Source of the DNA: Selaginella moellendorffii
Lineage: Eukaryota > Plantae > Lycopodiophyta
Assembly: GCF_000143415.4 (NCBI RefSeq)
Contig: NW_003314373.1
Location: 390,876 to 454,875 of the forward strand
Direction: 5' to 3'
DNA length: 64,000 nt
The translations under genes and the position numbers were made by a program. The notes beneath the pieces were generated by a model, which worked only from the letters and a program-made list of their open reading frames with translations, did not search any database and was not told the origin of the DNA. Shown piece by piece: positions 9,310 through 63,987 of the stretch; the first letter of the stretch is position 1; each line of letters opens with the position of its first letter.

Positions 9310-9368
9310 ATTTGGTATTGGAGCCTTTTCCTTAGTTCTAGCAAAGGATAAAGGCGGATTACTGGGAG

Positions 9369-12300: not shown

Positions 12301-14080
12301 CTACCTTGGGAGACACTTCAAGGTTTACACGGACAATGTGGCAACGAAACACTTCTTGTCACAGCCCGACCTAAGGGGGAAACAAGGTCAGTGGGCCAAT
12401 GCTTTAGCCAAGTTTGATTGCAAGATTCTGTACAAGCCTGGGAAGAGCAATATCATGGCGGATGCACTAAGTCGAAAAGCGAGCTTGAAGTTGGCGATAT
12501 CCAGCACAACAGCAACATTTTGGGATGATGTGCGGACAGCATATGAGAACAATGGTCTAGCAAAAGAAGTGTTGCTGTGGAATCTGGAGGCATGGGAAGC
12601 TCACCAAAGAGGTGAGCTACCAACGGAAGAGAAAACAGGCTATGCGGAACGCAATGGACTCATCTATTACAAGCAAACGAGGGTGTATGTCCCAGAAGGG
12701 GAACTAAGAAAGGTAGTCTTAGAGGAGTGTCATAATGGACTTCTTCCGGGACACGGCAAAGTGCCCAAGAAGATGGGTTTACTCAAGAGGAAGTATCACT
12801 GGCCAAATATGGCTAAGGACGTCCAAGACTATGTAAAGACATGTCCAACATGTCAGCAAGTCAAAGCCGTGACTAAGGCTAGTGGGGGCTTGTTGCAAAG
12901 CATCCCAATTCCAGATCGTCTGTGGAAATGTCTTACGATGGACTTTATCACGGGACTCCCCCCAAGCAAGGGGTTCGATGCGATATTCGTGGTGGTGGAC
13001 TGATTTTCAAAGATGGCACATTTCATACCCAACACAACGGGTGGATGCGGAAGGTGTGGCGAAGTTGTTCTTCGAACAAGTGGTTCGAGTGCGGGGAAGG
13101 CCAGAAGAGATTATCTCAGATCGAGATAAGATCTTCACCAATAGGTTCTGGAGAACTCTCCTAAAACAGTATTGCACCAAGTTGAAATTCAGCATATCCT
13201 ATCACCCACAGACAGGTATGGGGTATTAAGTCAAGTTTGATGGCACTAACACTTCTTGATAGACGGACAAACGGAAAGGGTGAATAGGCAGTTGGACGAT
13301 TATTTGCAATACTATGTCTTGGGAGACCAAACCGATTGGGTAAGTCATTTGGGACTTGCGGAAATGTGTTATAACAACTCACCACATTCGAGTATCGAGG
13401 TGAGTCCATAGGAAGTCATCAATGGGCGAGTTATTGAAGGCCCTGTGGAGCTCGGCGTGGCCGAGTGTCATGGAGAGTTACTCGTAGTAGAGGCATTCAC
13501 GGCAGAAAAACTCAACATTTGGAATCTAGTGACGGATTCCTTGGAACGGGCTCAACAAAGGCAAACCAAGTATGCAAACTAGAAGCGTCGGGATGTAGAG
13601 TTCCAAGTTGGGGAGAAGGTGTGTCTGAACACCAAGAACCTAAGGCTACCAAGTGGGATCAGCCAGAAGTTGACCCAAAGGTAAAATGCATGTATTCATG
13701 TAAAATGAATTGATCTTGAGTTCCTTAAGCAGGTTCGCGGGGCCTTACGAGATTGAGGCACGAATCGGTAAAGTGGCTTACCGTCTTTGACTTCCTCGAG
13801 AGATGGGGAAGATGCACCCAGTGTTCCACGTGAACTTACTCAAGCCGTACTTTAAGGATCCGCTTCGCAAGGACCAAGTAAGACCCTTACCTGAGGTTAT
13901 CCAAAGGGAAGAGGAATACGAAGTCGAGGCCATCCTCAATGCGCGCAAGAGCAAGCGACAAGGACGCGAGGTGAGAGAGTTCCATGTGAAGTGGAAAGGA
14001 TTTCCACACTGCGAAGCAACATAGGAATCGGAGGAGAACCTAGGTAATGCGCAAAATCTAGTGGAGGAATTTCTACATAG
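9369..14080 (+). pseudogene. degenerate gag-pol: gag, CCHC zinc knuckle, protease, RT, RNase H, integrase, chromodomain
   Basis: CYNCGEAGHFSREC; LINTGASDNF; YIDDILIYS; ETDASDFALGAVL; H..H..C..C integrase zinc finger, MDFITGLP; EYEVEAIL..VKWKGF; multiple stops and frameshifts. Confidence 0.92.
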
Positions 14081-14287
14081 CAGAACTTTATATACTTATG
14101 CAAAGTTCAATTAAAGTATCAATTTGTGAAGTTGAGCAATGGCATATGTTGGGACGCAAAGGCACGCCGAAGGTAAGCTAATTAGCATGGGTTAGCTAGG
14201 TCGACCAGACGTAGGGAACTACACCCGACTCCCCGTGGGGATGTAAAATCCGTAGACGTATTCTACGAAGGTTGGGTTCGAGTCCCA

Positions 14288-14876
14288 TGACTTGAGAGAC
14301 AATCCATGGGGTTCAAATATAGAGGGAAAGGGCCCATGAACAAGAGTGCACCCCTTTTTCCAATCGATTAAGGGTCTTGGGATAGTTGGAGTTAAGCGTC
14401 CTTGGGTTTGAATAGTACTAGGCTAGGTGACCTCCCGGGAAGTCCAAATTCAGGAGCTTACATTTGGTATCAGAGGGGTCTTGGGTCCGACTCTGTTGGT
14501 TGGCTAGGGGAATCGCACCACATGTTGATTGACATCTGGCTGATTGACATCTAGCTGGTCCAGTTTGCTCCTGCTGGGCTCGACCCGAGGGGTAGGGTGT
14601 CAAGAGAGCGAGGCTCTCGAGAGAGCTGTGGCTCTCAGCTTCCGTTCACGAGGGCGTGAACTTGCAAGGAAGCGTGGTGGATTGTAAGCAACCAAAGAGA
14701 ACGACTTGAGAGACGATCCATGGGGTTCAAATATAGAGGGAAAGGGCCCATGAACAAGAGTGCACCCCCTTTTCCAATCGGTTAAGGCTCTTGGGATAAT
14801 TGGAGTTAAGCGTCATTAAGTTTAAATAGTACTGGGCTGGGTGACCTCCCAGGAAGTCCAAATTTAGGAGCTTACA
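14288..14876 (+). mobile_element. TRIM (terminal-repeat retrotransposon in miniature)
   Basis: Direct repeats 14288-14462 (5'-truncated) and 14683-14876 (TGTAAG..CTTACA); PBS TGGTATCAGAG; purine-rich tract before 14683; ~220-bp non-coding interior; absent from the paralogous site at ~20340. Confidence 0.9.
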
Positions 14877-15137
14877 CCAACCCCCTAGTAAAGCAAGGTT
14901 GGGTTCAAGTCCCAACCCCATACTAAGGCGTGGTGGGGTGAGGAGTATAGAGACACCTATATTCTGTTGTCATGGGCTCTTGGCCGGGGAGGCTAACTTA
15001 GGCACACCGTGGCCGGGGAGGCTAACTTAGGCACATCGCTAAGTGGGGAGATGCCCCCGGAGACATGGTCAACAAGTCGTAGGATAAAAAAGAGACGTTC
15101 AATGTGGGCATCAAACTTCTTCTATGGGTGGTGGAGT

Positions 15138-16156
15138 TGTAAGGAACCATAAGGAGTATAGGGGCACCTATATTCTATGTCATGGGCTCTTGGCCGGGGA
15201 GGCTAACTTAGGCACACCGCTAAGTGGGGGGATGCCCCCGGAGACATGGTCAACAAGTCGTAGGATAAAAAAGAGACATTCGAGGTCAACAAGTCAAACC
15301 AACGAGACCGAATCCGAAGTCGGGTCTGAGATCGAGTCCAAGATCGAGCCCGAGACTGAGTCCGAGTACTAATCAGGTCAAGGGGTGAAAGCCCAAAGCG
15401 TGTGTCTCCCGAGGGGGGGGGCTGCAGGGGGTTCCAAAAGTATAGTAGGGATAGTGAGGTCCAGGAACTAGTTTTGAAGGAACTCTCCAGTGGGGCTTCC
15501 AAACTGACTTGAGGTTGGGATTGGGACCGAGGGGCCTTGGGTGGGAGTGAGCATGGACTTGGTTGGTGCCAGAGGGGCCATCCAAGGAAGTGCTCAAAAG
15601 CAACTCCCACTCCCGAAAGGGAAACCGATTGCGGTGCTCCCGGTTCATGTGGAGTGGTGCCCCACTTGAGTACCTTGTGGCTCATTGGTCCTCGCCCTTC
15701 CTAGGGGCTTGGGCCTTCCCTTTGGGATGGAAGTGGGGGGGCAGAGGTACCCATACCAGGCCATTAGGCCACGGTGTTTCGCCCTAGTGTCCCGAAGCAA
15801 GTGTTGCACCCAAGACTTGGGATTTAAATAGTCCCATGATCAAGTCTTGTGGTACCAAGGGATGTTAAGAACTTGGAAGATTGGTGTGCTTGGCTGCTTG
15901 TGTTTGCGGGGAGTGTAGCCGAACCTTAAGTCCAGTCTAACCCGGGGAGGGGGATTGGGAGAGATTTGGGAATCTATGGATGGATGGCTAATACTCCGTT
16001 GCTCGTGTAGTGAGTAGCTGAAACCAAGTAGGACCAAGTAGGAGCTAGTACCATAGGCAGGAACCTTGGTGAGGGAACTTAACAAAAGCCAAGGCAGTGT
16101 TGGACGAATAGACGAGGTAAGCTGGCAAATTGGAAAAGAAAAATTTGTGGCTTACA
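15138..16156 (+). repeat. LTR A2 (3' LTR of the inner copy; 5' part replaced by a duplicated 3'-UTR segment)
   Basis: TGTAAGGAACC at 15138, then a copy of the 14940-15100 UTR block, LTR body from ~15300, ends CTTACA followed by AAGGT. Confidence 0.85.
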
Positions 16157-18800
16157 AAGGTCTCACTTGGTCCTTGTGAAGCTGATCCTCAAAGTACGGC
16201 TTGAGTAAGTTCACATGGAACACTGGGTGCATCTTCCCCATCTCTCGAGGAAGTCAAAGATGGTAAGCCACTTTACCGATTCGTGCCTCAATCTCATAAG
16301 GCCCCGCGAACTTGCTCAAAGAACTCAAGATAAGTTCATTTCCAGAAATACATGCATTTTACCTTTGGGTCAACTTCCGATTGATCCCACTTGGTAGCCT
16401 TAGGTTCTTGGTGTTCAACCACACCTTCTCCCCATGTTGGAACTCTATGTCCTAGTGCCTCTGGTTCACATACTTGGTTTGTCTTTATTGAGCCCGTTTT
16501 AAGGAATCCCTCACTAGATTCCAAATATTGGGTCTTTCTGCTGTGAATGCCTCCACTGCGGGTAACTCTCTATGATACTCGGCCATGTCGAGTTCCACAT
16601 GACCTTCAATAGCTCACCCATTGATGACTTCCCATAGACTCACCCCGATACTTGAGTGTGGTGAGTTGTTATAGCACATTTCCCCAAGTCCCAAATGACT
16701 TATCCAATCAGTCTAGTCTTCGGAGATATAACATCGTAAATAATCCTCTAGCTGCCTATTCACCCTTTCCATTTGTCCATCTGTCAAGAAGTGTTAGTGC
16801 CATCCAACTTGACTTAATACCTAATACCTATCTGTGGGTGATAGGCTGTGTTGAATTTCAACTTGGTGCGATACTATTTCAGGAGAGTTCTTCAGAACCT
16901 ATTGGTGAAGATCTTATCTCAATCTGAGATGATCTCCTCTGGTCTTCCCCACACTCGAACCACTTGTTCGAAGAACAGTTTCGCTACACCTTCCGCATCC
17001 ACTTCCATTGTGGTGGGTATGAAATGTGCCATCTTAAAAAATTGGTCCACCACCACGAATATCGCATCAAACCCCTCACTTGGGGGAAGTCCCGTGATGA
17101 AGTCCATCGTAAGGCATTTCCACGGACGATCTGGAATTGGGATGCTTTATAACAAGCCCCCACTAACCTTAGTCACGACTTTGACCTACTGACATGTTGG
17201 ACATGTCTTACATAGTCTTGGACGTCCTTAGCTATATCTGGCCAGTGATACTTCCTCTTAAGTAGGCCCATATGTCAAATCCCACCATGTCCAACACAGT
17301 AAAACCATGTCTACTTTCCATGTCCCTACTTCGACTCTTGCTTGTCGAAGTATCTCATTGGTGCTTTGACTACCTTGAACAAATTCTATCGTCCTTGGTT
17401 CACCCAACTGCTGCACCGTTAGTCCAGCTTGCCAAACTATGTCTGCAGCCACAAAATTATCCGAAGCACCCATGTTAATAAGGATCTTAACAAAGCTACC
17501 TCCGAACTTCCTTTGGAGGGTTAGTAGATGTTGCGAATGATTCTCTACCAAAGTTACTCGTGTAATGAGTAACTTTGAGTTAGGGACTGGATCACGTACC
17601 TTAGTTTAGATTTCACCCGACTTAATGGCCATATTGGCTCTGGCCTTCTTCGGGTAGGGACATTCTCTCGAGAAGTGTCCCGCTTTGCCGCAGTTGTAGC
17701 ATACGTTGTTTCTCATGCTGCTAGTAGACTTGAACTTTTATCCATGGGTTTATCTCTTTTTGGTTGACTCCCCCAAATACTTGCTCGCTGGCCACCAAAT
17801 CTGCCTTTTCGGAACCCCAAGGACTCATTCTTAAAGAAACTCTTCTTAAATTTCCCTTTGTTGTATGTTCCCCTTGGTTTGGCCCCTTTGCTAAACATGG
17901 ACCCCGACCCCGTCATGTTCCCCTTTCACAGGTTATCATTGAAATGCACATTGATAGGCACATCCAACGCTTCCTTGTAATTGGTCGGGTTCAAATGCAT
18001 CACCCCGCCACGAGCCCAGGTTTGCAAGCCTGATACGAAGACATAGAATACATCCATATCACCCATATCCGTGACAAGTATCCCCTTTGCCATAAACAAA
18101 TTCACATACTCTTGAATGGTTCCAGTCTGCAGCCTACTCAGTTCATCCCTTAGGTGCAGAGTAGCATTTGGAGGAACGTAAGTTGCACGGATTCTCGCCT
18201 TCATCATTTCCCAAGTGGCCACCGGTCCTTTGTTAGCCTTTGTCATTCTCCACCAAGACTTGGCATTATCTGCCAAGTATGGTTTTGCACATGGGACCTT
18301 CTCCGAGCTCGGTAACCGCAACGCTCGGAAGTAGTCCTCCATATTGTAAAACCAATCCTCCACCACCTTATAGATGTTCACTCCCTTGAATATCGGTGGG
18401 GGCTTTGGTTTGTACTTGGGAACAGCCTGAGGGACTGATTCCACTTCGGTCTGTTCGACCTTGTTTGGTTCTGCCTCAGTCCCTACCGAAGGGTCTGCAC
18501 CTTCTGCGCTGCCAGCATCCGCAGTCTTTCGCTTTTTCTTCCGCTTCTCGTCACGCTTTAGTTTGCGTACGAGAGTCTCCAGCAGGGCATTGGTCTATGC
18601 CAACTGTCCTTCTAGAACATCCAATCAAGCATTGGACGACCGAACCTCGCCACCGGACTCTTGTTTAGAAGTTTCTTCACTAGAGTCCTCCTCATGCAAG
18701 GATTCCTCATCCATAGCATCTTGTTCGACCGGAGGCTCCAGCTCTAGAGGAGGTTCCATCTCCGCCTTGGTTCGTTTCTGCCCTGCCTTTGCCATCTCCC
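16157..18800 (-). pseudogene. second gag-protease/integrase copy with RT and RNase H deleted
   Basis: Minus-strand paralogue of 9369-10880 joined at ~17270 directly to the paralogue of 12773-13885. Confidence 0.88.
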
Positions 18801-19935: not shown

Positions 19936-20570
19936 ACCTTTACCTGAGGTTATCCAAAGGGAAGAGGAATACAAAGTTGAGGCCACCCTCAATGTGTGCA
20001 AGAGCAAGTGACAAGGACACGAGGTGAGAGAGTTCCATATGAAGTGGAAAGGATTTCCACATTGTGAAGCAACATGGGAACCGGAGGAGAATCTAGCGAA
20101 TGCGTGAGATCTAATGGAGGAATTTCTGCAAGGCAGAACACTATATATTTATGCAAAGTTCAATTAAAAGTATCAATTTGTGAAGTTGAGCAATTGCATA
20201 TGTTGGGACCCGAAGGCACGCCGAAGGTAAGCTAATTAGCATGGGTTAGCTAGGTTGACCAGGCATAGAAAACTACCCCTAACTCCCCGTGGGGATGTCA
20301 AATCCATAAACATATTCTATGGAGGTTGGGTTCAAGTCCCAACCCTCTAGTAAAACAAGGTTGGGTTCAAGTCTCAACCCCATACTAAAGCATGGTGAGG
20401 GAAGGGGTGTAGGGACACCTATACTCTGTTGTCATGGGCTCTTGGCCGGGGAGGTTAACTTATGCACACTGCTAAGTGGGGGGATGCCCTCGGAGACATG
20501 GTCAACAAGTCGTAGGATTAAAAAGAGGTGTTTGATATGGGTATTGAACTTCTTTTATAGGGGGTGGAGT

Positions 20571-21678
20571 TGTAAAAAACCGACTCCCCGAGGTGTTGAA
20601 GGCTAAAGGATCCCCGAAGGCACGATAAAAATGATAAAGAGTTCATCGAATGAGACTGAGTCCGAGACCGACTCTAAGACCGAGTTTGAGACTAAGTTCG
20701 AGATCAAGTCCGCGACCGACTCCGAGACCGAGTGCGAGATTGAGTCCGAGACCGAGTTTGAGACCGAGTCCGAGATCCGATATTGGGTCTGAGACTGAGT
20801 CCGAGATCGAGTCCGAGACTGAGTCCGAGACCAAGTCCAAAGTCAAGTCCAAAGTCGAGTCCGAAATCGAGTCCGAGACCGAGTCTGATTACTAATACAG
20901 GTCATGGGGTGAAAGCCCAAAGCGTGTGTCTCCCAGGGGGGGGGGGCTGCAGGGGGTTCCAAAAGTATAGTAGGGATAATGAGGTTTAGGAACCAATCTT
21001 GAAGAAACTCTCCAGTGGTGCTTCCAAACTGACTTGAGGTTGAGACTGGGGCTAAGGGGCCTTGGGTGGGAGTGAGTATGGACTCGGGTGGTGCTGGAGG
21101 GGCCACCCAAGGAAGTGCTCAAGAGCAGCTCCCACTCTCGGAAGGGAAACTACGGTGCTCCCGGCTCATGTAAAGTGGTGCCCCATTTGAGTACCTTGCA
21201 GCTCATTGGTCTTCACCCTACCTAAGGGCTTGGGCCTTCCCTTTGGGATGGAAGTGGGGGGGTAGAGGTACCCATACCGGGCCGTTAGGCCACGGTGTTT
21301 CGCCCCAGTATCCCGAAGTAAGTGTTGCACTCAAGGCTTGGGATTTAAAGGGTCCCATGATCAAATTTTGTTGTACCAAGGGATGTTAAGAACCTGGAGG
21401 CTTGGTGTGCTTGGCTGCTTGTGCTTGCAGGGAGTGTAGCCGAACCTTAAGTCCAGTCTAACCCAGGGAGGGGGATTGGGAGAGATTTGGGAATCCGTGA
21501 ATGGGTGGCTAACACTCCATTGCTCGTGCAGTGAGTAGCTGAAACCAAGTAAGACCAAGTAGGAGCTGGTACAATAGGTGAGGAACATTTGCAAGGGAAC
21601 TTAGCTAAAGCCAAGGCAGTGTTGGTCGGATAGACGAGGTAAGCTGGCAAATTGAAAAGGAAAAATTTGTGACTTATA
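20571..21678 (+). repeat. LTR A4 (3' LTR of the outer family A copy)
   Basis: Preceded by a chromodomain remnant (19941-20130), the 3' UTR and PPT GGGGTGGAGT. Confidence 0.9.
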
Positions 21679-23419
21679 GAAATGTGTGTTTAGATCCAAG
21701 GATACAATGTATCTTGGGTACCATATTTCTCATAAAGGTTTGCAAGTTAATCCTGACAAACTTGAGCTCTTCCTTCTTTACTCTTTTCTCATGTTTTTGA
21801 AGAGTTTGTCATTCCAGCATCTATAGATTTTTTGGATGAGGATTCCATACTGTTGGTGATTGTTGTACTTAATGTTCAATGTCAACAAAGTGTGAAGCAA
21901 GATTTACCTTTTCTTGACGAGGTTCGTGAAGCTCAAAAGATTGAGCCATGGATTCGAAGGATTCGTGATGGGTTTGAGAATCCTACATCATTTGCAAATG
22001 ACTTGCCATTTCAACATTTACATTCTCAATATCACCTTGAGAGCAGTCTTCTTTATTTTATGAAAACGGATCCTAATGATCATTTATGGCTGGTGGTGCC
22101 TTTGATCTTTATTCCATACTTTCTCCACTCCTACCATGATTCTCCTATTCTAGGCAGGTATATGGGACATTGTCATATGACTAAGAAGCTGCGTAGGTCT
22201 TTCTATTGGATAGGATGTGATGTTATCTAGTATGTGCGTAGCTATGTTTGGTGCCAAGCTTGTAATACTCCCTCTCGTATTGTGGAAGGACAGTTAAAGT
22301 CAATTGTAATTCCCATTCATTTGAGTTGATAGCATTTGATCTAATAGGGCCTTTTTCACGATCGACTATTGATAATAAGTATGTCATTATTGCTTTTGAC
22401 TACTTAACTCATTAGGTGGAAGTCGGTGCTCTTGCTAGTGCATTTGCAATTGCTATTGGATACTTCCTCCTTAATCAAGTGGTGTTTCAGCATTTCTTTC
22501 TAGAACGAATTCTTTTGGATAATGATCCTACATTTACGGCTGAGGCATTTCACATTTTGATGTTTTGGTTAGGGATATGCCACACTTTCACAAGTGCTTA
22601 TCATACACAATTAAATGGTTTGGTGGAATAGCTCGAACCTTCAAAGGGATGGTTGCAAAGTATATGAACTTTCAATATTTAGATTAAAATGATTATTTAC
22701 TGTTTCTTTAGTATGCATATGTCATAGGGGTGTAGAGTTTTATTGGTGCTTCACCATATAAACTTTTATATGGTCATGATCTAATACTACCAATGGAGTT
22801 GAGTTTACCTTTGCGATTGCCACGAGCTATTAATGCTAAATATTAGGATTAGTATTTGACGAGCATTCTCCCACTTGTCTGAGCAAAGTCTACCAAACAC
22901 TTGGGCTATGTACAAGTGGGACAACAACAGCGCTACAACTCCCATCATCATCCACTTGCCAAATACAAAGTGGATGATTTAGTGTTACTCCGTTTTCCTA
23001 ATCTTACAGTATATGGTTTGTCTAAGGGGCTGTTTGCTCAGTGGAAGGGAATGTATCAAGTGTTATGGCAAGTTAGACTGCAAGCTTATGAGGTTCAACA
23101 TAATGTCCAATAGGCTGATCCTCCAAAAATTATACATATACAACAGCTGAAACACTTCATACAAAGAGATCAAGAAAACTAGTGCCACCTATAAATCCAT
23201 CAATGCTTTCTCCTGATGCTCCTCTAGATCTTGGTTTGTCCATTGTCTTTTATTATTCTGAGAGGAGGGGATGATGTGAGGTTCAAGTGTACAATACCGT
23301 ATATTAATATTAGTGTAGTGGGATTTTGATAGTCATCAGATTGGTTTCAATCCAAACCACTCGTTTTTACATATAAGCTAGGGTTTTTGGGCTAATTTAT
23401 ATGCATATTTATATATTAT

Positions 23420-45778: not shown

Positions 45779-45850
45779 GTCGTTGTAGTATAGTGGTAAG
45801 TATTTCCGCCTGTCACGCGGACGACCCGGGTTCGATCCCCGGCAACGGCG
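45779..45850 (+). tRNA. trnD-GUC: tRNA-Asp(GTC)
   Basis: 72-nt cloverleaf GTCGTTG..CAACGGCG, anticodon stem TCCGC/GCGGA around CTGTCAC, GGTTCGATCC T-arm, T-run terminator just downstream. Confidence 0.97.
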
Positions 45851-50210: not shown

Positions 50211-52069
50211 GCTCTGATGCACATAATGCCGCCAAGCGCCCTGCAGCTGTTTTTTCTGACTCTTGTTTTAAACAGGGGTGCTTGATTTGCGGCTTCAAAG
50301 AATGAGGTAGCTAAAGTTTTAAGATTTGAACACCTTAAAAGCATAAATATACTTGGTCTGCAATTTTTTGGGTATACAATGTACATTGAAAAGCAAGATT
50401 CACCACACCATGAAAAAAAGTGATGGACACAATTTGACCATTGTGATGCACTTATCCAGGGATCGAATTGCAAGACATAAACTCGCGTGACTGGAGTAGT
50501 GTATACGTTGTGATGCTTCTGTGCATTAGCTCGCGAAACTGGATTCCAGAGGGACTCTTTTCGGATAGCTTCACCAGTCTCAAGAGCCGCATCGAGCAAT
50601 GGTTTCGAGACATACAGTGACGCGATGGAAAGCTCGTTCCACGGACACTGCGCGCCCTGGATTGCGTCGCCTTGTGGCTACAAAGTTGGAACGTTTGATT
50701 TTACAATTGAGCAAATACAGAGGTATATATATAAAAGTTAGGCAAAAATGGAAAATTTTAAGTGTTAGTGTCTTTTGGGGGTTTAATTTTGTTTATTTCG
50801 TGTAGCTGTTATCGGAAAATTTCTCTAAAATAATAGATAGTTAAAAATTTGAAAGTGTACCATTTGATTTGCATGATATTTGTAATATTTCAATAAAGAC
50901 AATGCTTATTTTAATAAAAAACTTGTCATGATGTTCTTTCTAAATAGAAAACTGGAACCTCATGCCAAGTCAGAGTGAAAAGAGTGAAGCTAGGATAACA
51001 TAATGTGTCATGTACATAAGTCACAGGGTTATAGTTCTTGATTTTTTAACTGTTTTAGATAAATAATTTGTAGAGTCAGTAATTATTTTAAAAGTTATTA
51101 AAGTAGCTATAATAATGGAAAAATCTGGAATTTTAAATATAAACATGTTCAGCTATAAATTAATAGTGAATTATATTTCATAAATTCTCAGAGTTTTTAA
51201 GTATTTATTTTATTACTGTGATCTAGATCAAGACTGTAAATTCATAGTCTATATCTGTTAAAAGATCAAATGTATCATGTTACTATGAATCTTAGGTCAT
51301 GGCACAAGGACACAAGTATTAAGTTATGACAAATAGAGAAATATAGATTCTAACATCTGAAAAAAATAATCATGAACAAAACTATGAGAAGAACTTGCTT
51401 CTATGCCTCCATTTTTTTTCCTACTAATGAAAAGATAAAAAAAATTAAAATAATAATATACCAAAAAAAATAATTCTTTATTTTCTTGCATTATCACTTT
51501 TTAAATGAGTATCAAACTATAGAAATTAGTATACCAATTTGTTTTTTAGATAAACTTTTTCCAAGAATAATTAAGAGGGGCATGAGTTCAAATTATTTAA
51601 ATCCTGAAATTAACATTTATAACAAATATACAATATACATAAAATTTTATGGCTTGATAATGTATAAAATTTCTATGAAATTTTATAATTTGAACCCATA
51701 ATAATATCAATTGCCTTTAGTAAATGATTAATTCCAATTCAAATAAATTCTTCAGCAAGGTTGATCCCTTGCTCTACTCTGCTCCACAGCAATGCTCACT
51801 AATTGGGCAGCACATAGCAAAATAGTGGGCCTAATCAGATTGTGAGACACAAAATCCCTAGGCCCCAGAGTGGAGCCGAAAGGGTGCCACGTGGTAGTGG
51901 CCGAAGCAAAAGCCAAACGAGCGTAACACATTTGGACTAAAAGGCTTTGACTTGAGAGGTTGAGAGCGGGAGTGGAACTCCCAACGGAGTGCTCAAAGAA
52001 TGAGCATGAAGCGAGCAATAAGCAAGGCTCCAAAAAAGGACCCAAAAAGGACTAACACATGACACGTGG

Positions 52070-52622
52070 GAGGAGTCCGAGGTGGACCGAGACGGAGTCC
52101 GAGATGGAGTCCGAGGTGGACCGAGACGGAGTCCGAGATGGAGTCCGAGATGGAGTCCGAGGTGGACCGAGATGGAGTCCGAGATGGAGTCCAAGGTGCA
52201 CCGAGACGGAGTCCGAGATGGAGTCCGAGATGGACCGAGACGGAGTCCGAGATGGAGTCTGAGATGGACCGAGACGGAGTCCGAGATGGAGTCCGAGATG
52301 GACCGAGATGGAGTCCGAGATGGACCGAGACGGAGTCCGAGATGGAGTCCGAGATGGAGTCCGAGATGGACCAAGACAGAGTCCGAGATGGAGTCCGAGA
52401 TAGACCGAGACGGAGTTTGAGATGGAGTCCGAGATGGAGTCCGAGATGGACCCGAGATGGAATCCGAGATGGAGTCCGAGAAGGACCTGAGATGGAGTCC
52501 GAGGTCAAGACTGAGACCGAGACCGAGACTGAGACTGAGATCAGGACCGAGACCAAGACCGAGGCCGAGTTTGGGTCCGAGTCCGAGTCCGAGTCTGAGT
52601 CCGAGTCTGAGTTCGAGTCTGA
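52070..52622. repeat. GAGTCCGAGATG/GACCGAGACG-type minisatellite in the 5' LTR B
   Basis: Hexamer-derived tandem array; shorter copy at 57910-58330. Confidence 0.9.
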
Positions 52623-55600
52623 GAGGGTGAAAGCCCAAAGCGTTCATCTCCCAGACCCTGGGGGGTTTGGTGAGCTCCAAAAGTATAGTAGGGGGAGGAC
52701 TGCAGTGGAGCCAGTTTGGCCAGGAAAGGCTAGTTTGGCCCAAGAAGGCCAGACCCAGTGTTGGGTGATGAACTAACCATTGGGAAGTCCAAAACTAGAG
52801 TGAATACGGACTGACAAGCGGGGTAGCTTGGTGAAGTGTTCAAGAGCCGGCTTTAGTTCCCCCGAGAGATCGTCTGGTCGATGCTCCCAGTCCAAGTGTG
52901 GGTGGCACTACCTACTTGGATACCTGGTGTGGCTCAATGGAACCTCGCTCTAAGCCCATGGCTAGAGCACCTAAAGGCGAAAGGCAGGGAGAGTACCCAC
53001 GAGGCCCGCATAGAGCCACGGTGTTCCGAAATGTCGTCCCAAAGTCCCAGACTGTGGAAAGGAAGAGGAGTAGCCCTTGGGTGTGGTGACCAAGGACACA
53101 GTCACACAGGGAGGAAGTCCTAGAGGACAGTGGGACTTAGTGGTCGGGCCCGTGGGCCTTGATCCAGTGGCAGTGTCGGCGAACACGGCCAAGGACGGAA
53201 AGGGACTTAATGGGGACTGGAATGGAGATGTTGGGGAAGGCTAATCCCCATGTCTGCGGGCATCCTAAGGATGCTAAGGAGTGGATCTGGGATGATCACT
53301 AGTGGATGGATGGCCCAGTCTTTGAGTGACGGGACTAGGATGTAGGTGGTGTCAGACCATCGGTGTGACCAAGGTAAAGGGGCATGGCCTTAGCGTAACG
53401 GGCTGATATATTGGTGGTACCTTGGGGTGTTAGTCATGGGATTGGACACGTGGAGCACTTGGACCAAGTGCATAGGTTGAGTGGCGGGGATGCCATTCTC
53501 GGGGCTAGTAAGCCCAAGTCCAAAATAGGACTTACGGAGGTTGTGAGTGAGACTCCTCTAAGTGGTCGAAGGTGCGGTTAAGTGACTAAAGTAAAATGGA
53601 AAAATTAGTCGCTTATAACTTGGTATCGGAGCTGTTCCTTAGTCCGACTCTTATTGGTTGCCAAGCATATCACCACTTGTATTGGAGTTGAAAGGTCCTA
53701 GATATGGACCTATCCTCGAGGAGTAGCATGTCGAAAGAACATGGCTCTCCACTCAAGTTCATGCGTGAACTTGTACACGATATGGTGTATGAAAGAGGGC
53801 CAATAAGGGAACGACTTTGGGATCTTGGGAACAGTATAAGGGTTTCCTCAGAGAGCTGAGGATGTGATCCAGATGAGCTTTTGACGCAGCAAACGAGCTA
53901 ATGTAGTTGTAGTAAACAACTATAGTTGGGATCACGGGAAAGATGCGAATTCCAAAACAATAAAGGAGTCACAAGATTACCCTTATATGGTTGAGGCTGG
54001 TACTCATAAATTTGAGACCAGAATTGTTGACCGTGGGAGGTCAAATACAGAAGAGGACACCAGTCCTTGAAATGGTAGCCGGGGCTACCTCTAATAAATG
54101 CTGGAACAACCCAAAGAGTTGGGGGTGTACTTAAAGATGAGTTGCTATTCTCATCACATGGACAAGTAGTCTTAAGGGGCAAAGGTTAGCCCAAGAAAAT
54201 CATCAAGTGTCAGAGTAACACTTGCAAAGATTGTCCTTGTGAATAGGACATGAATACAAGAAGTTGTATTCCAGTGAGTTGGCACCTCTAAGACTGAGAC
54301 CTCATAAGTTGTTGGATTAGCAAAGTCCAAATGCTGGATGACTCAAGCGGAGTCAGGGAATGGTCCTAAGGGATTGGTTGGAGCATTTGGACCGAGGTGT
54401 ATGGTGCCCCATGAGGTATGGGGAGGATCATAAGATCCAAGTATGAGAACAGTAGGTATCTCATTGATGGCAGAATGTGCCATATTAAAGTTGTGGGAAA
54501 GATGTTCCCAGAAGAAACCAACTTTGGCCCAGAGTTGGGTGCAAACACTATAGTGCGGTGCTAACGGATAGTTAGTATGAGGAACAACTATATTGGTCTT
54601 GGCAAAGACCTAAACACTAATAAGTAGTGTCATAAGGGTAAGCTCGTAGGGCCGATGGTGTGGAGACACCAAATGTACCAAGGTATGATACCTGGAGGTT
54701 ATGATGGTGGGTTCATAAGAACCCCTTGCTAAGGGAATCCTAATGGAAGTGGGAATGACATGGCCTAAGCTGGAAGGCATGCGGTTGGAGTGTGGTGACC
54801 CAGATAATGATGGAGGTGTGGAAGCACCAAGCAATGAGTTGTAGGACTTGACAACTATAAGGTAACTAAGCAAGAGGTGCAAGAAAATTGGTTAAATGGA
54901 TAGAAGGTAGCTACCCAAGACTTCTTAATGGCATAAGGAAGTTAGATATACCCTTACGGGGGGATAAATTGCTTATGTTGCGATATAGTAAATCAATGTC
55001 GTAAACGGGAATGCTCATTGTCATGAAGCCATCATTGGGACACCCAAACACTCTAGAACACCAAGAGGTGGTGTTTCGTGTCGCAAGAGCAATAGATAAG
55101 GCCCAAGGGACTAAGTCCCTAGCGAATGATGAATAGTAGGTGCTATTTAAATGTCCAAGGTTGTGGAGACAGGAGAAGACTGTCTACCCGAATTGGACAA
55201 AGCCAAAAATGGAATTTTGGCAAGGCTAGTGATGGGCATGTAAAGGCCCATAAGCAGCAACGTTAATCCCGATGTGTGGGATTATAAGGTGAGCATGCCC
55301 AAGATTGAGGAACCACTCCTTAGGCTATCGGGTAGGTTCATCCCTAAGAATACTTACTAAAGCATAGTAAAATGTGCAAAGCTATCCTCCTAGTCTGGAG
55401 GAGAATAACCAAAGGAAACATATGGGGCCAAAAGGCAAGTAGTATTGGGATGGAACTGAACCATAGAAATCGAAGGGCATATCCAACGGTGGTTATGCAA
55501 GTTGGGAGTGGAGAATCAAGAGGGTGCTCGAGGATGTTGTTGCTAGCAACCATGATGCCATGGAGAGTCTAAAATATGGAATTGTCCATGTTAGACTATA

Positions 55601-56139
55601 TGGCAACTATAAAGTTTGCGAAAAAGGAGGCCTTAGCAAGCTAAGGGACAGAGTTCCTTCAAGGTTCCCAAAGACGATTCTAGGTAGCTTAGTACCTAGA
55701 AAGGCCAAATGTAAATGGTTCATGAAATGCGTGAAATCAGAGTGGCACAGTAGAAGCGTGGTCTTGAAGCTTGCCATGAGGCAAAGCTATCAAGGTTGGG
55801 GAAGTAGTTCCCGAGTGTTCAAAGAGAGGGCTTTGAACGAAAGTCGATGGCCAAGAACTTTCACGCTTATGCAAGAACCATGTTACAGTGGTCGGAGGAC
55901 TTGCCAAGCGAGATTGGCAAGTCGGGGGAACAAATGCCCTAGTTGAAGGTGATAATTTCAAAAGGGTGGGCCATGGGGCTGAGCATGGAGGAGTCCATGC
56001 ATGATCACAGACTTGTCAAGCGAGAAGACTTGGCAGTAAGGAGGGACTAGGTTCCTAAGCTGTGATCTGTAGCGCGCTTTAAATATAAGTTGGTGCACCG
56101 GCGTGGGGAGTCACGCCAGGCATCCAGTGTGATGCCGTC

Positions 56140-56510
56140 CGTAGATGCATATACGGAGGTTGGGTTCGAGTCCCGACCCTCTAGTGCTTGGGTTCGAGTC
56201 CTAGATCACTAGGGCATGGTGATGGTTTGGAATATGAGGACACTCATATTTCGGTGGTCATGGACTCTCAGTGAGGAGATTGGTTTGGGAACACCGCCAA
56301 GCAAGGGATGCCTCGGAGTCGTGATGCACGGTTAGATTGCTTAGAGTGAGAGCTCGACATATCTAACTTGAACACTTTGGTGCAAAAGGCACCAAGGACG
56401 TGGTGAATGAGATGGGGACACCCAGTCTCATTTGCTATAGATCCTTGGCTGGAAGGGCTGGCTTGGGCGCACCGCCAAGTGTGGGGGATGCCCCCGGGGT
56501 CATAGTCAAC
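56140..56510 (+). ncRNA. candidate structured cis-acting RNA module (T-loop hairpins plus two four-way-junction units)
   Basis: Homologous, with compensatory changes, to 14250-15254 and 20300-20506. Confidence 0.55.
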
Positions 56511-57909
56511 AATATAGAGGGGTCTGGAAGACCTAGTTCCTATTGGTAGACCTATTAAGGGGTCAAGATGAGATCACCAGGTGATCTTGTGGCTAAACAA
56601 GGACAAGGTCTTTGTTTGGGTTAAGGAATATGATTCCTAGTTCAAAGTGTTGATTTGAACTATTGATAATGGTGTGGCTTGGTTAAGGTGACAAAGTGGG
56701 AAGAACACCTAAAGGGAAATGAGCTATGTCAATGCTGTGGCATAGTAAGTCCGAGGAATGTAGTCTCTATAAGGGATCCAAGAAAGGGTCTCAAAAGTTG
56801 GGCCGTGGATAGAGCCCACAGTAGAAAATGTTAAAGAGATGTACTAGGGGTGAACACCCTCTGGATTTGGCAAAGCAAAGTGTTTGCTATGGAACTGAAA
56901 GGAAACCTCGAAAATGGAGGTAGCGATCCTATGTTGCTGGGTGCAACAATCAAGGATAGGAGCAAAAGATTAGTGGCTAAGAAAAGAGCCATGGGAATCC
57001 TAGGAAAGAATCCAAATGGCAAAGTTAGGCCAAGAACACTAATGTGTTGGGTGCTAACGGATTGTGGGAAAGGCAAAGTTTCCCTAAGGGTGGATTCCCA
57101 ACTGCTCCGATTTGGCGAAGTGGATGCTCCAAAAGGGGGAGCGGTAAGGTAGCCAAATAATAGGGCCGTGGGCAGCCTTAGCACCAATTATGATAACTAA
57201 AACTTAGTGTCAAAGGTGGCACGATATTGGAGAGAGGATGATGGTATCCTCAAGTAAAGAACTTCCTAGGATAGGGAAGTGGAGTTGCACCATGTGCAAT
57301 GTAAGGTGTCGGAGACACCTAGGAAATTGACTCTGAGAAGTCAAAACTAAAAGTTCCAAAGTGCAAGATTATGTCAATGGAATTTAAGACTACTCAAGAA
57401 TGAGTAGTGGAATTGAGTTAAAGAAGGAGTCTCTAATGGGTTTAGCAAGAACTAAATCAATAAAAGGGAGCAAACCACCCCAGGTGGTCGAATGAGTCTC
57501 TATATTTGAGAGACGATGCTCGTTAGAGGATGGACAAGGCATGGTGTGCCTTTGGTGTCAAACCATAGACAAATGTTGGCTGGGTGCCAAGGATGGAACT
57601 AGTAATACATGTGGGGGTTACTTTATAAGAGGGTTTACTATTCAATGAGGACATCGAACTTCGTCTATGGGTGGTAGAGTTGTGAGACACAAAATCCCTA
57701 GGCCCCAGAGTGGAGCCGAAAGGGTGCCACGTGGTAGTGGCCGAAGCAAAAGCCAAATGAGCATAACACGTTTGGACTAAAAGGCTCCGACTTGAGAGGT
57801 TGAGAGCGGGAGTGGAACTCCCAACGGAGTGCTCAAGGAATGAGCATGAAGCGAGCAATAAGCAAGGCTCCAAAAAGGGACCCAAAAAGGACCAACACAT
57901 GACATGTGG

Positions 57910-58330
57910 GAGGAGTCCGAGGTGGACCGAGACGGAGTCCGAGATGGAGTCCGAGGTGGACCGAGACGGAGTCCGAGATGGAGTCCGAGGTGGACCGAGA
58001 CGGAGTCCGAGATGGAGTCTGAGGTGGACCGAGACAGAGTCCGAGATGGAGTCCGAGATGGACCGAGACGGAGTCCGAGATGGAGTCCGAGATGGAGTCC
58101 AAGATGGACCGAGACGGAGTCCGAGATGGACCGAGACGGAGTTCGAGATAGAGTCCGAGATGGAGTCTGAGATGGACCCGAGATGGAATCCGAGATGGAG
58201 TCCGAGAAGGACCCGAGATGGAGTCCGAGGTCGAGACCGAGACCGAGACTGAGACCGAGACTGAGATCGGGACCGAGACCAAGACCGAGGCCGAGTCTGG
58301 GTCCGAGTCCGAGTTCGAGTTCGAGTCTGA
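57910..58330. repeat. same minisatellite in the 3' LTR B
   Basis: Accounts for the ~130-bp length difference between the two LTRs. Confidence 0.9.
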
Positions 58331-60369
58331 GAGGGTGAAAGCCCAAAGCGTTCGTCTCCTAGACCCTGGGGGGTTTGGTGAGCTCCAAAAGTATAGTAGG
58401 GGGAGGACTGCAGTGGAGCCAGTTTGGCCAGGAAAGGCCAAGTTGGCCCAGGAAAGCCAAACCCAGTGTTGGGTGATGAACTGACCACTGGGAAGTCCAA
58501 GACTAGAGTGAATACGGACTGACAAGCGGGGTAGCTTGGTGAAGTGCTCAAGAGCCGGCTTTAGTTCCCCCGGGAGATCGTCTGGCCGATGCTCCCAGTC
58601 CAAGTGTGGGTGGCACTACCTACTTGGATATCTGGTGTGGCTCAATGGAACCTTGCTCTAAGCCCATGGCTAGAGCACCTAAAGGCGAAAGGCAGGGAGA
58701 GTACCCACGAGGCCCACGTAGAGCCACGGTGTTCCGAAATGTCGTCCCAAAGTCCCAGACTGTGGAAAGGAAGAGGAGTAGCCCTCAGGTGTGGTGACCA
58801 AGGACACAATCACACAAGGAGGAAGTCCTAGAGGATAGTGGGACTTAGTGGTCGGGCCTGTGGGCCTTGATCCAGTGGCAGTGTCGGCGAACACGGCCAA
58901 GGACGGAAAGGGACTTGGTGGGGACTGGAACGGAGATGTTGGGGAAGGCTAATCCCCATGTCTGCGGGCATCCTAAGGATGCTAAGGAGTGGATCTGGGT
59001 TGATCACTCATGGATGGATGGCCCAGTCTTTGAGTGACGGGACTAGGATGTAGGTGGTGTCAGACCATCGGTGTGACCAAGGTAAAGGGGCATGGCCTTA
59101 GCATAACGGGCTGATATATTGGTGGTACCTTGGGGTGTCGGTCATGGGATCAAACACGTGAAGCACTTGGACCAAGTGCATAGGTTGAGTGGCAAGGATG
59201 CTATTTTCGGGGCTAGTAAGCCCAAGTCCAAAATAAGACTTATGGAGATTGTGAGTGAGACTCTTCCAAGTGGTCGAAGGTGCGGTTAAGTGACTAAAGT
59301 AAAATGGAAAAATTAGTCACTTACACAGATAACACTCAACAACACTAATTGATGCTCTGCTGGACAAACTAATCATGCTCCCATCTTGACACATATGATT
59401 TTAAAATACTTAGATTTAATCTTTTATTCAGTATAAAAGTTTAAAAAATCTTATTCAGTATTTAAATTTTTAAATAATTACTTTGTATTTATCAAAATTA
59501 ATAAAACGTAATTAGAAAATAATTCCCTGTGCATTGCACTTGGTTTGCTTAACAGTAGTTCTTTTTACTTACTAATCAAATTCATCAATGTTTATAATTT
59601 TAAAACACAAGATTAAAGAATATACTAGAATATACTAGAAAGTTTTTACAAAAATTTATAAATTATAAGCATATTTATATTTTTAAAATATAAGAATAAT
59701 TTAAATTAATAACAGCAGTTAGATAGTAGAATATTCTCAAATATTCAAATATATTTTAAGTATATCCACTAGTTTGCTTAAACAAACCAAAAAGTCTATG
59801 ATACAGAGATATTAAGGTTGCATACATAAGAATAACAGTACAAATATTGATAATTCATTTTATCCTCACACTTGGTAAATTCTGAACTAATTTAAATTCC
59901 TTGTTCATAGCTAGTTGTTGCTCAAGTCCTGAAAATCAATGAGGACAATATTGTTTTAAATATAAGCATGCTATTATTAGAATGCTGGTCTGGTAATTGG
60001 AATGAGTACAATCTAAGTCTGCTATTTTCATACATGGAAATGACTGTATTCATTTTTCTCTAAATGATAATGAAATAAAAATATTGATATCATTATGTCT
60101 TGCAATTTGTTTCAAAATTATGATTATGTTTGAGGTAGGACAACCGAGTCTAATTGGTACAAAATTTTACTCATTCCCACTGCTGTCATGCTTGCTCAAC
60201 TTTACTGGTGGTTAAATTTCTAATCCATACAGAAGAAAACATTTGAACTTTCAGAGTTGACCGTTTGACCCTCCGAACTGTAGCTCCGCGTGCTTGGAGC
60301 ATCCTGGATAAGAGAAGACCTTTTCTCAACTAAAGCTACAACCGCATTTAGCAACACATTCCTAGGAAA

Positions 60370-60844: not shown

Positions 60845-61763
60845 TATAAAAGGGATAAAAGTTGTCCGGCGTTGATCCGGTCAACGAGCTTGACTCTCCT
60901 GGAACTCTCTCTTGGAACTAAAACGATTTGACTCCTCCCGCGAATGGTAGCATATTCTCCTTCCCCATGCTTTCCATGCTCGCAATTAAATATCTGTCCA
61001 CTTTGCGGGCATATTCCCCCGCGGGGCCAAAGAAATATCACGGGAAAAGGTCCATCTCACATACGTGGACGCATCTGCGAGATAGACATGTGTTAAGAGA
61101 ACGCATCCAAAACCCATGGAATAAGGATATTGTTTACAAACCCTTGCCAAAACTATCACCCTCTCGATTTGTACAGTGGCATAACAATGTGAAATTTCAC
61201 CTAAGGTTTCAAGCCCAATATAGTCAGTCCAATAAAAAAAATTTCACTACAGTGGCCAATCTACCCACCATTGCATTATTTTCGTCCATCACTCAGTGAG
61301 CAAGAGAGTGACAAATAAGGAGAGTAATATTCCCCTCCATCCTTGCGAGGCTATGGCCGAGAGAAGAGCTTCTAACAACCCGTGAATGCATGCTACACAC
61401 AGTAACTTAAAGGTAAATGCTTAGCTCGTGGTAGAAACAAGGGGAAAAAGATTTTTTTTTATTTTGCCTGTGGAGAAAGGGTTGCATTAGGTTATGCCAG
61501 TTTTCTCTGTCCAGTGGATTGATTCATGAGAGGCGGAGGAGCGCTCGGCGCCTTGGCGGCGTGTGCGAGGACGTAGAAATTCCGATTCCCCGGAGGATTG
61601 TCTCGAGGTAATGCGCGATGGCACTGGCGCTTGTCTTGTTCTTGGATGGATTGTTTCTCCCTTGGAATGGTTGTTGCTGGGATGCATTGGAATTGCATGG
61701 CTCGAATCTGACCCCGGATTGTTCTTGGTTTCTCGATCCAGGCCGAAATCTCGACACTCCGCA

Positions 61764-63987
61764 ATGCTGGCCAGCAGTGGCATGGCGGCGACATCGGCGC
61801 CATGGGGCGGCTCTGCGCTGGATTGCTCCAAGAACAAGGTCGCTCCATCGAAATCCGCCACAGTCCGGTGTTCTTTCAACCCGGCCGGGGCAGCAATCTC
61901 GTCGTCGTCGAGCGGCAAATCTTTGCTCCACAGCACGTTCGTAGCAGAAAGGCTCGCTCCCATCGAGAAATCTGTAGTCCGGAGGAGGATTCGTCCGGTC
62001 GTGCGTGCCGAGGCGGCATCGGTGGGCGTTTCTTCGCCTCTCGGCGACGGAATTCCAGCCAAGAAGAAGTTCTTTGGGGTCGACACTGTGACGCTCAAGA
62101 AGGTGATACCTCTGGGTCTCATGTTCTTCTGTATTCTCTTCAACTACACGATCCTGCGAGACACCAAGGACGTTTTGGTGGTGACGGCCAAAGGAAGCAG
62201 TGCTGAGATTATTCCTTTCCTCAAGACTTGGGTGAATCTCCCCATGGCTATCGGCTTCATGGTCATCTACACCAAGCTTTCCAACGTACTGTCCAGGGAG
62301 GCTCTCTTCTACGCTTGCATTCTCCCCTTCATTGGGTTTTTCGGGAGTTTTGCGTTCTTGCTATATCCTTTGCGTGACATCCTCCACCCGACTGCTCTAG
62401 CGGACCATCTTCTCTCGGTTCTCGGCCCCCGGTTCCTGGGCCCGATTGCCATCTTTCGCAACTGGACGTTTGTGCTGTTCTACGTCATGGCCGAGTTATG
62501 GGGGAGTGTCGTCGTATCGGTTCTCTTCTGGGGATTTGCGAACCAGGTACTTACTTGCTTACGTTGTGTTGTTTGTTCTTAAACTTGTGTCTTCTCTTTC
62601 AGATCACCACTGTGGATGAAGCAAAGCAGTTCTATCCCTTGTTTGGCTTGGGAGCCAACGTAGCGCTTGTTTTCTCGGGACGAACTGTTAAGTACTTCTC
62701 CGAATTAAGAGGACGGCTGGGACCTGGCGTTGATGGCTGGGGAATGTCTCTGAAAGGAATGATGAGCATTGTTGTAATGCTTGGTTTTGCCATCTGTGGC
62801 ATATATTGGTGGGTTAATGCTTTTGTTGTCAACGATCCCAACCTTCCCAAGATTGAGAAGAAGAAAAAGGTCAGTCATCTTTTAAGTTTTTCTTAAAACC
62901 ATTTACTAACTCTTTTGAGCATCTCCAGAAGAGCAAGCCTAAGATGAGCATGGGCGAAAGTGCGAAGTTCTTGTTGAACTCGAGATACATCCGGGACCTT
63001 GCAACCCTGGTGGTTGCTTATGGAATCAGTATTAACCTCGTCGAAGTTACATGGAAGTCGAAGCTCAAAGCTCAGGTAACGATAGTCTTCTTTCGGTGAT
63101 ACTGGCTGCAACAACGCCTGTGTTTGTTAACGCAGTTTCCAAGTCCCAACGACTACTCGTCGTTCATGGGAGACTTTTCGACGTGGACCGGAGTTGTCAC
63201 ATTCAGTATGATGTTGCTGAGCAGGGTAATTTTCCGTAAATATGGATGGGGAGTTGCAGCTGCCATTACACCAAGTGTTCTTCTTGTAACTGGAGTGGCA
63301 TTCTTCTCGCTGGTTCTCTTCAGCGATCCACTAACTCCATTCCTCGGAGGTATTGGGTTGACTCCACTGATGGCAGCTGTTTACGTTGGAGCTTTGCAAA
63401 ACATATTCAGTAAAAGTGCCAAGTACAGCTTGTTCGACCCGTGCAAGGAAATGGCTTACATTCCCTTGGACGAAGATACAAAGGTAAATCTATGAATGTA
63501 TGCTGCTCTGTCGTTTATTTTTGTTTGTTGTACTTCAGGTGAAAGGAAAGGCCGCTATTGACGTTGTATGCAATCCGTTAGGAAAATCAGGAGGTGCTCT
63601 CATTCAGCAGGTTCTGATCTTGTCGTTCGGGTCCCTTGCCAGTTCAACTCCGTACCTTGGCGCCATCCTCTTGGTTATTGTGTTAGCCTGGCTGGGTGCT
63701 GCTCGATCACTCGACAAGCAATTCACTCCAATGGTCCAAGAGGATTTGAAGGGCAAGCTACTGGAAGGAAAACTCTCGGCTATGACTGCGGCTTTATCTG
63801 AAACTTCCAAGGTTGGCACTCGCGAGGTAAGCCTTCTTCCGAGCTACATGCAACGTAACTTAAAACCAAGTCTTAAAACGAGCGGTAAAAGAGTTGCATG
63901 AGAGTTCACGGCTGCATTTTTCGGTTTTAGAGTGGACAGGATGAACAAGTCACGTCATCGTCGTCCAAGAGTCTTAAGACAAGTTAG
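61764..63987 (+). CDS. NTT: plastid ATP/ADP transporter (TLC family), 6 exons
   Basis: Transit-peptide-like N-terminus; LMFFCILFNYTILRDTKD, ELWGSVVVSVLFWGFANQ, KSAKYSLFDPCKEMAYIPLD, GKSGGALIQQ; last exon 63931-63987. Confidence 0.96.

Follow-up and report, generated by a model that had tools for sequence, protein, structure and literature searches.

Retroelements of the window

In the window, that is, the whole 64-kb stretch of DNA analyzed here, a complete LARD was found, as well as a chromovirus block with a Cassandra-like TRIM nested in it. The region 27310-49372 contains a cluster of five intronless PPR genes, an ORF for a TPR protein, a P450 fragment, and a tRNA-Asp(GTC) gene (45779-45850), and an exon of a plastidic ATP/ADP transporter was found at 61563-62582; a homology search with the transporter ORF pointed to a plant source. 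The retroelement features are the following:

51841-59325, + strand: complete LARD, with LTRs at 51841-53617 and 57681-59325, a TSD, a PBS, and a non-coding internal domain
57667-57680, + strand: true polypurine tract (PPT) of the LARD (ATGGGTGGTAGAGT), directly before the 3' LTR
9312-15137, + strand: internal region of chromovirus copy 1, with Pfam domains, broken by stops, with the 3' UTR starting at ~14100
14288-14876: Cassandra-like TRIM, 589 bp, nested in the chromovirus 3' UTR, with two ~175-bp LTRs containing 5S-rRNA-like sequence

The LTRs of the LARD have a length of 1.65-1.78 kb, are 88% identical to each other, and run from TGTGAG to CTTACA. The element is flanked on both sides by a clean 5-bp target duplication, CAGAT, and its PBS (53620-53632) is of the initiator-tRNA type. 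No Pfam domain was found in the internal ORFs of 80 aa or more. By the features that define the class (long LTRs, PBS, PPT, TSD, and a non-coding internal domain), this element is a LARD.

The Pfam domains of the coding element are found in the order zf-CCHC, RVP_2, RVT_1, RT_RNaseH, Integrase_H2C2, rve, and Chromo; the Chromo domain has a score of 30.7 bits, and rve scores below its cut-off. This element is a chromovirus, i.e., a Ty3/gypsy element with a chromodomain, broken by stops. The chromovirus block contains three LTRs (~8214-9311, 15138-16159, and 20571-21688) and interrupts the RT-coding region of another retroelement (8040-8213 and 21689-21760). The stretch from 16160 to ~19900 is an inverted chromovirus fragment; thus, the block is composite, with both nesting and rearrangement.

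The nested TRIM has its PBS (TGGTATCAGAGG) at 14465-14476, and its LTRs match the Rfam 5S model with 23-26 bits, short of the 38-bit cut-off. At ~20339-20341, the TRIM site is empty in the second chromovirus copy, and the target duplication of the TRIM is not clean. The 5S-like stretches near the first copy of the unit described below (unit A) were considered as a part of the chromovirus 3' UTR; they are the LTRs of this TRIM and are missing from the second chromovirus copy. The stretch 14673-14695 of the TRIM is a copy of the chromovirus PPT and LTR start.

The LARD and the chromovirus were taken for two different retroelement families in the initial annotation of this DNA. Their LTRs are ~70% identical, and both elements agree in PBS type and in LTR termini, which makes them related partners instead. 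A sensitive BLAST comparison of the LARD with the chromovirus block demonstrated homology in four places only:

both LTRs: ~70% identity
53587-53643: LTR end and PBS
~40 nt before the 3' LTR
56138-56512: cassette with the unit

Thus, the LARD belongs with this chromovirus lineage as a non-autonomous relative, which either descended from it or parasitises it. The LTR ends at 9300-9311, 14452-14462, 53607-53617, and 59315-59325, belonging to the chromovirus, the nested TRIM, and the LARD, have nearly the same bases; the shared end is GCTTACA, with ACTTACA or GCTTATA in the LARD. The PBSs of all three elements are of the initiator-tRNA type. These near-identical ends and the common PBS type, together with the copy of the chromovirus PPT and LTR start in the TRIM, fit one chromovirus lineage mobilising both non-autonomous elements, the TRIM and the LARD. 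Additionally, variable arrays of 12-, 22-, and 34-bp tandem repeats, similar between the families, were found in U3 of the chromovirus and LARD LTRs (8290-8520, 20650-20912, 52016-52553, and 57844-58279).

Copies and fold of the unit

A unit of ~102 nt is present in the 64-kb window in five copies, herein referred to as units A-E, all on the + strand and all located where the initial annotation had placed them:

14942-15073, + strand: unit A, in the 3' UTR of chromovirus copy 1, damaged by an internal duplication of 29-30 nt
15153-15254, + strand: unit B, located 15 nt inside the rearranged LTR2 of chromovirus copy 1
20404-20506, + strand: unit C, single copy in the second chromovirus 3' UTR, ending 53 nt upstream of the PPT
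56229-56329, + strand: unit D, first of the tandem pair in the LARD
56406-56510, + strand: unit E, second of the tandem pair in the LARD

A covariance model built on the structure proposed in that annotation and run with filters off gave 77-111 bits for units A-E, and the next best score in the 64 kb was 12.6 bits; the model therefore picks only these five copies in the window. All of the stems and loops quoted earlier can be read in the sequence. Three copies had been assigned to the chromovirus 3' UTR; this location holds for units A and C, but unit B lies inside the rearranged LTR.

Units A, B, and C are mutually 90-96% identical, whereas units D and E show 30-44% stem divergence from units A-C and from each other. 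Thus, the five copies represent only three independent lineages. Unit E resembles the chromovirus units more closely than it resembles its neighbor D; by position, unit D corresponds to the chromovirus unit. In unit A, the tandem duplication of 29-30 nt (14983-15040) comprises hairpin 1 and half of hairpin 2 and alters the junction; this unit is probably non-functional.

Each unit consists of a hairpin of 9-12 bp (H1) with a G[A/G]CA loop and, after a gap of 0-2 nt, a fully paired four-way junction. The junction has a closing stem of 13 bp with one small internal loop, zero unpaired junction bases, and three hairpins. The loops of these hairpins are a purine-only loop of 5-6 nt (GGGGA, GGAAG, or GAGGAG), an 8-nt loop G[C/A][A/G]CACCG, and GAUG, respectively. 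When the copies were folded singly, each unit reached the hairpin and the four-way junction or came near to this shape, with an MFE from -38 to -53 kcal/mol and, relative to dinucleotide shuffles, z from -2.5 to -3.4 for the + strand. In the LARD, the parts of the tandem pair are the following:

56229-56252, + strand: hairpin H1 of unit D, 10 bp, GACA loop (fold, covariance-model alignment, and pair counts)
56254-56329, + strand: four-way junction of unit D, closing stem and three hairpins with the loops GAGGAG, GAACACCG, and GAUG
56330-56398, + strand: spacer between units D and E, weakly similar in alignment to the chromovirus stretch from the unit to the LTR start
56406-56432, + strand: hairpin H1 of unit E, 12 bp with one bulge, ACAC/GACA loop (fold)
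56433-56510, + strand: four-way junction of unit E, with the loops GGAAG, GCGCACCG, and GAUG (fold and covariance-model alignment)

The inner hairpins 1 and 3 of unit D are weak in the single-sequence fold.

Covariation was analyzed in an alignment that was fitted to the structure and includes the three independent lineages. In this alignment, 93% of the cells pair, and 10 of the 38 pairs are changed on both sides, such pairs being present in all five helices. None of 500 shuffles matched the observed pairing, and controls with slid partners were 35-50% paired. Between the lineages, at 30-44% stem divergence, 70-80% of the changed pairs are still paired, with 5-7 double changes per comparison. 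Simulated random substitutions reached the observed pairing in only 6, 35, and 26 of 20000 trials (p from ~3e-4 to 2e-3). G-U combinations occupy 28 cells vs. 6 cells for A-C, and the loop sequences stay constant while the stem sequences turn over. The reverse complement folds poorly (z from -0.6 to -1.2 vs. the values given above for the plus strand), which indicates that the constraint acted on the sense RNA and not on the DNA or the antisense strand. The view that pairing is kept despite sequence divergence is thus confirmed by the compensatory changes in all helices and by the strand-specific fold. The RNA fold of the unit is real, covarying, and strand-specific.

The unit forms the 3' part of a structured cassette of ~400-550 nt near the 3' end of the internal region. 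Upstream of the unit, the cassette contains the following features:

55960-56214, + strand: upstream part of the LARD cassette, with two GGAG-tetraloop hairpins, further hairpins, and two T-arm-like hairpins (MFE z -4.4)
55983-56003 and 56100-56117: GGAG-tetraloop hairpins of the LARD cassette, 7 bp each, upstream of the T-arm-like hairpins
56116-56208; 14250-14287 with 14877-14925; 20300-20385: T-arm-like hairpins

By alignment, the part 55960-56214 of the LARD is colinear with 20262-20403 of the chromovirus, and the order of the cassette is the same in both elements: hairpins, two T-arm-like hairpins, a C[AG]TGGTG motif, and the unit. The upstream part gave a weak match to the Rfam model Tymo_tRNA-like (18 bits, E 0.26). 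The two consecutive hairpins located just upstream of the unit in the LARD and in the chromovirus have a tRNA T-arm, or B-box, consensus (GGTTCGAGTCC-like); neither ARAGORN nor the Rfam tRNA model calls them. An anticodon-arm-like hairpin beside this pair shows a compensatory change, TCCATA...TATGGA vs. TCCGTA...TACGGA.

Flanking motifs, tandem duplications, and searches for relatives

The LTR starts (TGTGAG, TGTAAGG, and TGTAAAA) were placed by the target duplication of the LARD and by LTR alignments, and these starts define the true PPTs. The latter are G-rich stretches of the GGGTGGTGGAGT type at 15125-15137, 20556-20570, and 57667-57680. The motif C[AG]TGGTG, reported to precede four of the five units, was indeed found before units A, C, D, and E and is absent at this place in unit B. 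In the LARD, it has two occurrences before units:

56215-56221, + strand: CATGGTG before unit D, PPT-like
56399-56405, + strand: CGTGGTG before unit E, abutting hairpin H1 with zero linker

In the window, the motif occurs 29 times vs. 11 times expected; its presence before the units reflects homology. In alignment, it shows a short similarity to the true PPTs and to a PPT-like stretch in the internal region of the TRIM (14673-14685). A putative resemblance of the motif to a part of the initiator tRNA was set aside.

The unit is flanked by two PPT-like direct repeats located ~175-185 nt apart. The tandem periods are 177-178 nt from unit D to unit E and, with the internal duplication of unit A discounted, 181 nt from unit A to unit B. 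Since the spacing of the PPT-like repeats equals the period of both tandem duplications, selection for two copies is not needed: unequal template switching or recombination between these repeats would explain both duplications. The unit had been expected to have a cis function because of its retention and duplication in an element without coding capacity; the retention still speaks for such a function, but the duplication need not reflect selection.

For comparison with known RNA families, Rfam 15 (4227 models) was used at the gathering level and permissively (E up to 10). At the gathering level, the sole match in the window is the tRNA at 45779-45850, with none at the units. With E up to 10, in the two regions searched, the units are overlapped solely by a noise match, sR44 (11.7 bits). 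Retroviral elements of Rfam showed no sequence or structure match to the units. No ribozymes (hammerhead of retrozymes, twister-sister, hairpin, hatchet, or pistol) were found in the same two regions with E up to 10. At the units, no matches to xrRNA and 3' CITE families were found, and the topology, a four-way junction after a hairpin, is unlike that of xrRNA. In the window, ARAGORN and Rfam call only the tRNA-Asp gene. Interpretation of the four-way junction as a tRNA cloverleaf was rejected, given its 13-bp closing stem, zero junction nucleotides, and loops of 5, 8, and 4 nt. The comparison with Rfam thus agrees with the earlier statement that the unit belongs to no recognized RNA family; the accompanying suggestions of a ribozyme, an Xrn1-resistant element, or a translation enhancer received no support from it.

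Relatives of the unit were also searched for beyond the window. A DNA pattern matching units B, D, and E had 0 viral matches. In metagenomes, the same pattern had 60 matches, approximately the number estimated for chance, and none of these was confirmed by the model (best score 17.8 bits, E 0.15). In a search with the integrase protein among 5.8 billion proteins and 1.84 billion representatives, the best matches were 35-49% identical, and no close relative of this chromovirus was found in those collections. Two integrase-related loci were examined, and both are without the unit. In three RNA-seq runs of the same organism, 0, 4, and 2 reads fell on 55200-57600, none of them on the units; such counts are uninformative on expression, RNA ends, and strand and do not indicate silence. 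No description of this specific ~100-nt motif was found in the literature searched.

Possible roles of the unit

The unit lies on the sense genomic RNA, being on the same strand as the ORFs and in the same direction as the LTRs. Its fold is retained by a putatively trans-mobilised non-autonomous LARD, a bona fide insertion with a TSD and zero coding capacity. Apart from the LTRs and the PBS leader, the cassette is the only sequence that the LARD shares with the chromovirus, which makes a cis-acting signal the most likely explanation. Furthermore, selection on a transposable element concerns transposition alone, and a sense-strand fold maintained by compensatory changes in both the chromovirus and its non-coding relative therefore argues for a cis role in the replication cycle. 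We propose, with moderate confidence, that the unit is a cis-acting signal of the genomic RNA that is retained for mobilisation in trans; packaging or dimerisation is the favored role, and export or stability is the second choice.

In this view, the unit is a structured part of the sense genomic RNA in a single chromovirus lineage, with H1 stacked beside the fully paired four-way junction and with three arms that carry the conserved G-rich purine, CACC, and GAUG loops. Proteins of the chromovirus or host factors would have to recognize this module on every RNA destined for reverse transcription and integration. In the favored version, the Gag zinc-knuckle protein would encapsidate or dimerise RNA selectively through the unit. 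Zinc knuckles of Gag classically bind exposed G-rich loops. The exposed G- and purine-rich loops of the unit and the GGAG tetraloops of two upstream hairpins, together with the CCHC knuckle found by Pfam in the Gag region of the chromovirus, favor packaging or dimerisation. Several observations count against a cis-acting signal. The position of the unit is not conserved, the LARD units being located ~1.15 kb upstream of the LARD PPT vs. 53 nt for chromovirus unit C. Only three independent lineages are available, and a single 64-kb window supplied them all; identities of 88-91% within the LTR pairs show that every copy is old, and units A and D are partly degraded. No homologues of the unit outside the window were found in the viral, metagenome, and integrase-relative searches. 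Against packaging in particular, retroviral packaging signals are usually located in the 5' leader and not in the 3' UTR.

Possible but unlikely is an alternative in which the unit serves the export or stability of unspliced genomic RNA, similarly to a CTE, and recruits host export factors directly. The MPMV CTE, the IAP RTE, and the direct repeats of avian retroviruses lie in the 3' region, and tandem copies are known. The chromovirus unit also occupies the 3' UTR, a short distance before the PPT, and this position suits an export or stability element equally well; the RNA of the non-coding LARD would need an export signal as much as that of the autonomous element does. No retroviral element of Rfam matches the unit, however, and nothing in these data separates export from packaging; moreover, we know of no plant equivalent of the CTE. 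An improbable alternative is a relic without present function, such as an old LTR boundary or a captured small RNA or SINE, which the elements would share by descent and the stems of which would have survived by chance and by recent gene conversion or template switching between co-packaged RNAs. The T-arm-like hairpins adjoining the unit and the PPT-like tract before each unit, as at an LTR start, are consistent with such an origin, as are the age and partial decay of all copies; the closeness of unit E to the chromovirus units hints at exchange. This alternative is opposed by the double compensatory changes in every helix, the excess of G-U over A-C, the small simulated p-values, the loops kept while the stems turn over, and the fact that the cassette is the only internal LARD segment alignable besides the PBS leader.

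The remaining alternatives depend on the pairing of the loops with the upstream motif. A double pseudoknot between them was predicted in the initial annotation, and the complementarity is present: C[AG]UGGUG is exactly complementary to CACC and AUG of two neighboring loops (GGUG to CACC, and CAU or CGU to AUG) in the right order. One stacked form of the four-way junction would also put both arms side by side. In contrast to the stems, the pseudoknot partners are invariant or show only transitions that keep G-U pairs; thus, there is no covariation behind the double pseudoknot. In unit E, the strand abuts H1 without a linker, and H1 is located at the outer end of the 13-bp stem, far from the loops, which makes pairing in cis sterically doubtful; pairing in trans or with the adjacent unit may still occur. 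Unit B lacks the motif at this position, and the PPT-like nature of the strand offers an alternative reason for its conservation. The predicted double pseudoknot is therefore not supported by these data. Pairing of the PBS leader with hairpin 2 was also considered and rejected, since the LARD shows no matching change. Given these observations and the lack of Rfam ribozyme, xrRNA, or 3' CITE matches at the unit, it is very improbable that the unit is a doubly pseudoknotted compact fold that resists exonucleases, functions as a ribozyme, or enhances translation. Also quite improbable is an accessory role in reverse transcription, in which the CACC loops would pair with GGUG tracts at plus-strand priming and shape the use of the PPT or provide a second priming site. 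The alignment of the pre-unit motif with the true PPTs and the TRIM stretch is consistent with this role, as are the short distance between unit C and its PPT and the location of units B and E directly after PPT or PPT-like tracts. It is opposed by the large distance between the LARD units and the functional PPT, by the length of the complementarity (just 3-4 bp, invariant), and by the short similarity to PPTs. A broader version may be suggested as a speculative and rather improbable model. Here, the unit would represent a new class of plant retroelement RNA signals with a tertiary fold, whose conserved CACC and GAUG loops would pair with the flanking PPT-like GGUG in cis or between co-packaged RNAs, coupling dimerisation or packaging to plus-strand priming and tagging the RNA of the chromovirus and the LARD.

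The unit may be compared with known systems. The GGAG/GGNG loops of HIV-1 SL1-SL4 and the GACG hairpins of MoMuLV are packaging and dimerisation signals that are recognized by CCHC Gag proteins and kept by trans-mobilised defective elements. Like these signals, the unit combines several sense-strand hairpins with exposed G-rich loops, in an element whose Gag has a CCHC knuckle. Unlike them, it is located in the 3' UTR and not in the 5' leader or gag, and it has no sequence similarity to them. Among SINE/LINE partners, the non-autonomous element retains the same structured 3' RNA module as the autonomous one, whose machinery recognizes it thereby. Sharing of the unit resembles the sharing of such tails, but the reverse transcriptases of non-LTR elements prime at the 3' end, whereas LTR elements are primed from a tRNA at the PBS, and recognition therefore follows a different logic. 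The xrRNAs of flaviviruses and plant viruses resemble the unit in having a compact junction and a proposed pairing between an upstream strand and a loop. They are three-way junctions or single hairpins with a ring-forming pseudoknot, however, and the geometry of the unit disfavors a pseudoknot in cis. The CTE and RTE of simple retroviruses and IAP are also discrete, transferable, cis-acting RNA structures (PMC10746203, PMC1363727); they are animal-retroviral, and the unit has no Rfam or sequence match to them. Cassandra, Helenus, and Ajax are TRIMs with LTRs derived from small RNAs, 5S- or tRNA-like (PMC10886601). In contrast, none of the tests performed here indicates a 5S or tRNA origin of the four-way-junction unit, which lies in the internal region and not in the LTR.

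To our knowledge, the signals by which the proteins of plant LTR retrotransposons choose their RNAs, and by which LARDs and TRIMs hijack these proteins, are essentially unmapped. Internal domains with conserved RNA structure are a recognized general feature of LARDs and TRIMs (PMC7215508). The LARDs and TRIMs described by Kalendar and co-workers are likewise non-coding, with long LTRs, a PBS, a PPT, a structure-conserved interior, and presumed mobilisation in trans (PMC7215508). Different from that description, a specific ~100-nt motif is defined here, and it is common to the LARD and its candidate autonomous partner, a chromovirus. Structured LARD and TRIM RNA being already known (PMC7215508), the novelty of the present analysis is this defined motif and its sharing with the candidate helper. 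If the unit is only a relic, it would belong to routine repeat anatomy. Otherwise, the unit is a short, defined, and mutable candidate for the RNA-selection signal of the chromovirus and its LARD, and, as a sequence tag, it may help to match the non-autonomous families of this genome to their helpers.
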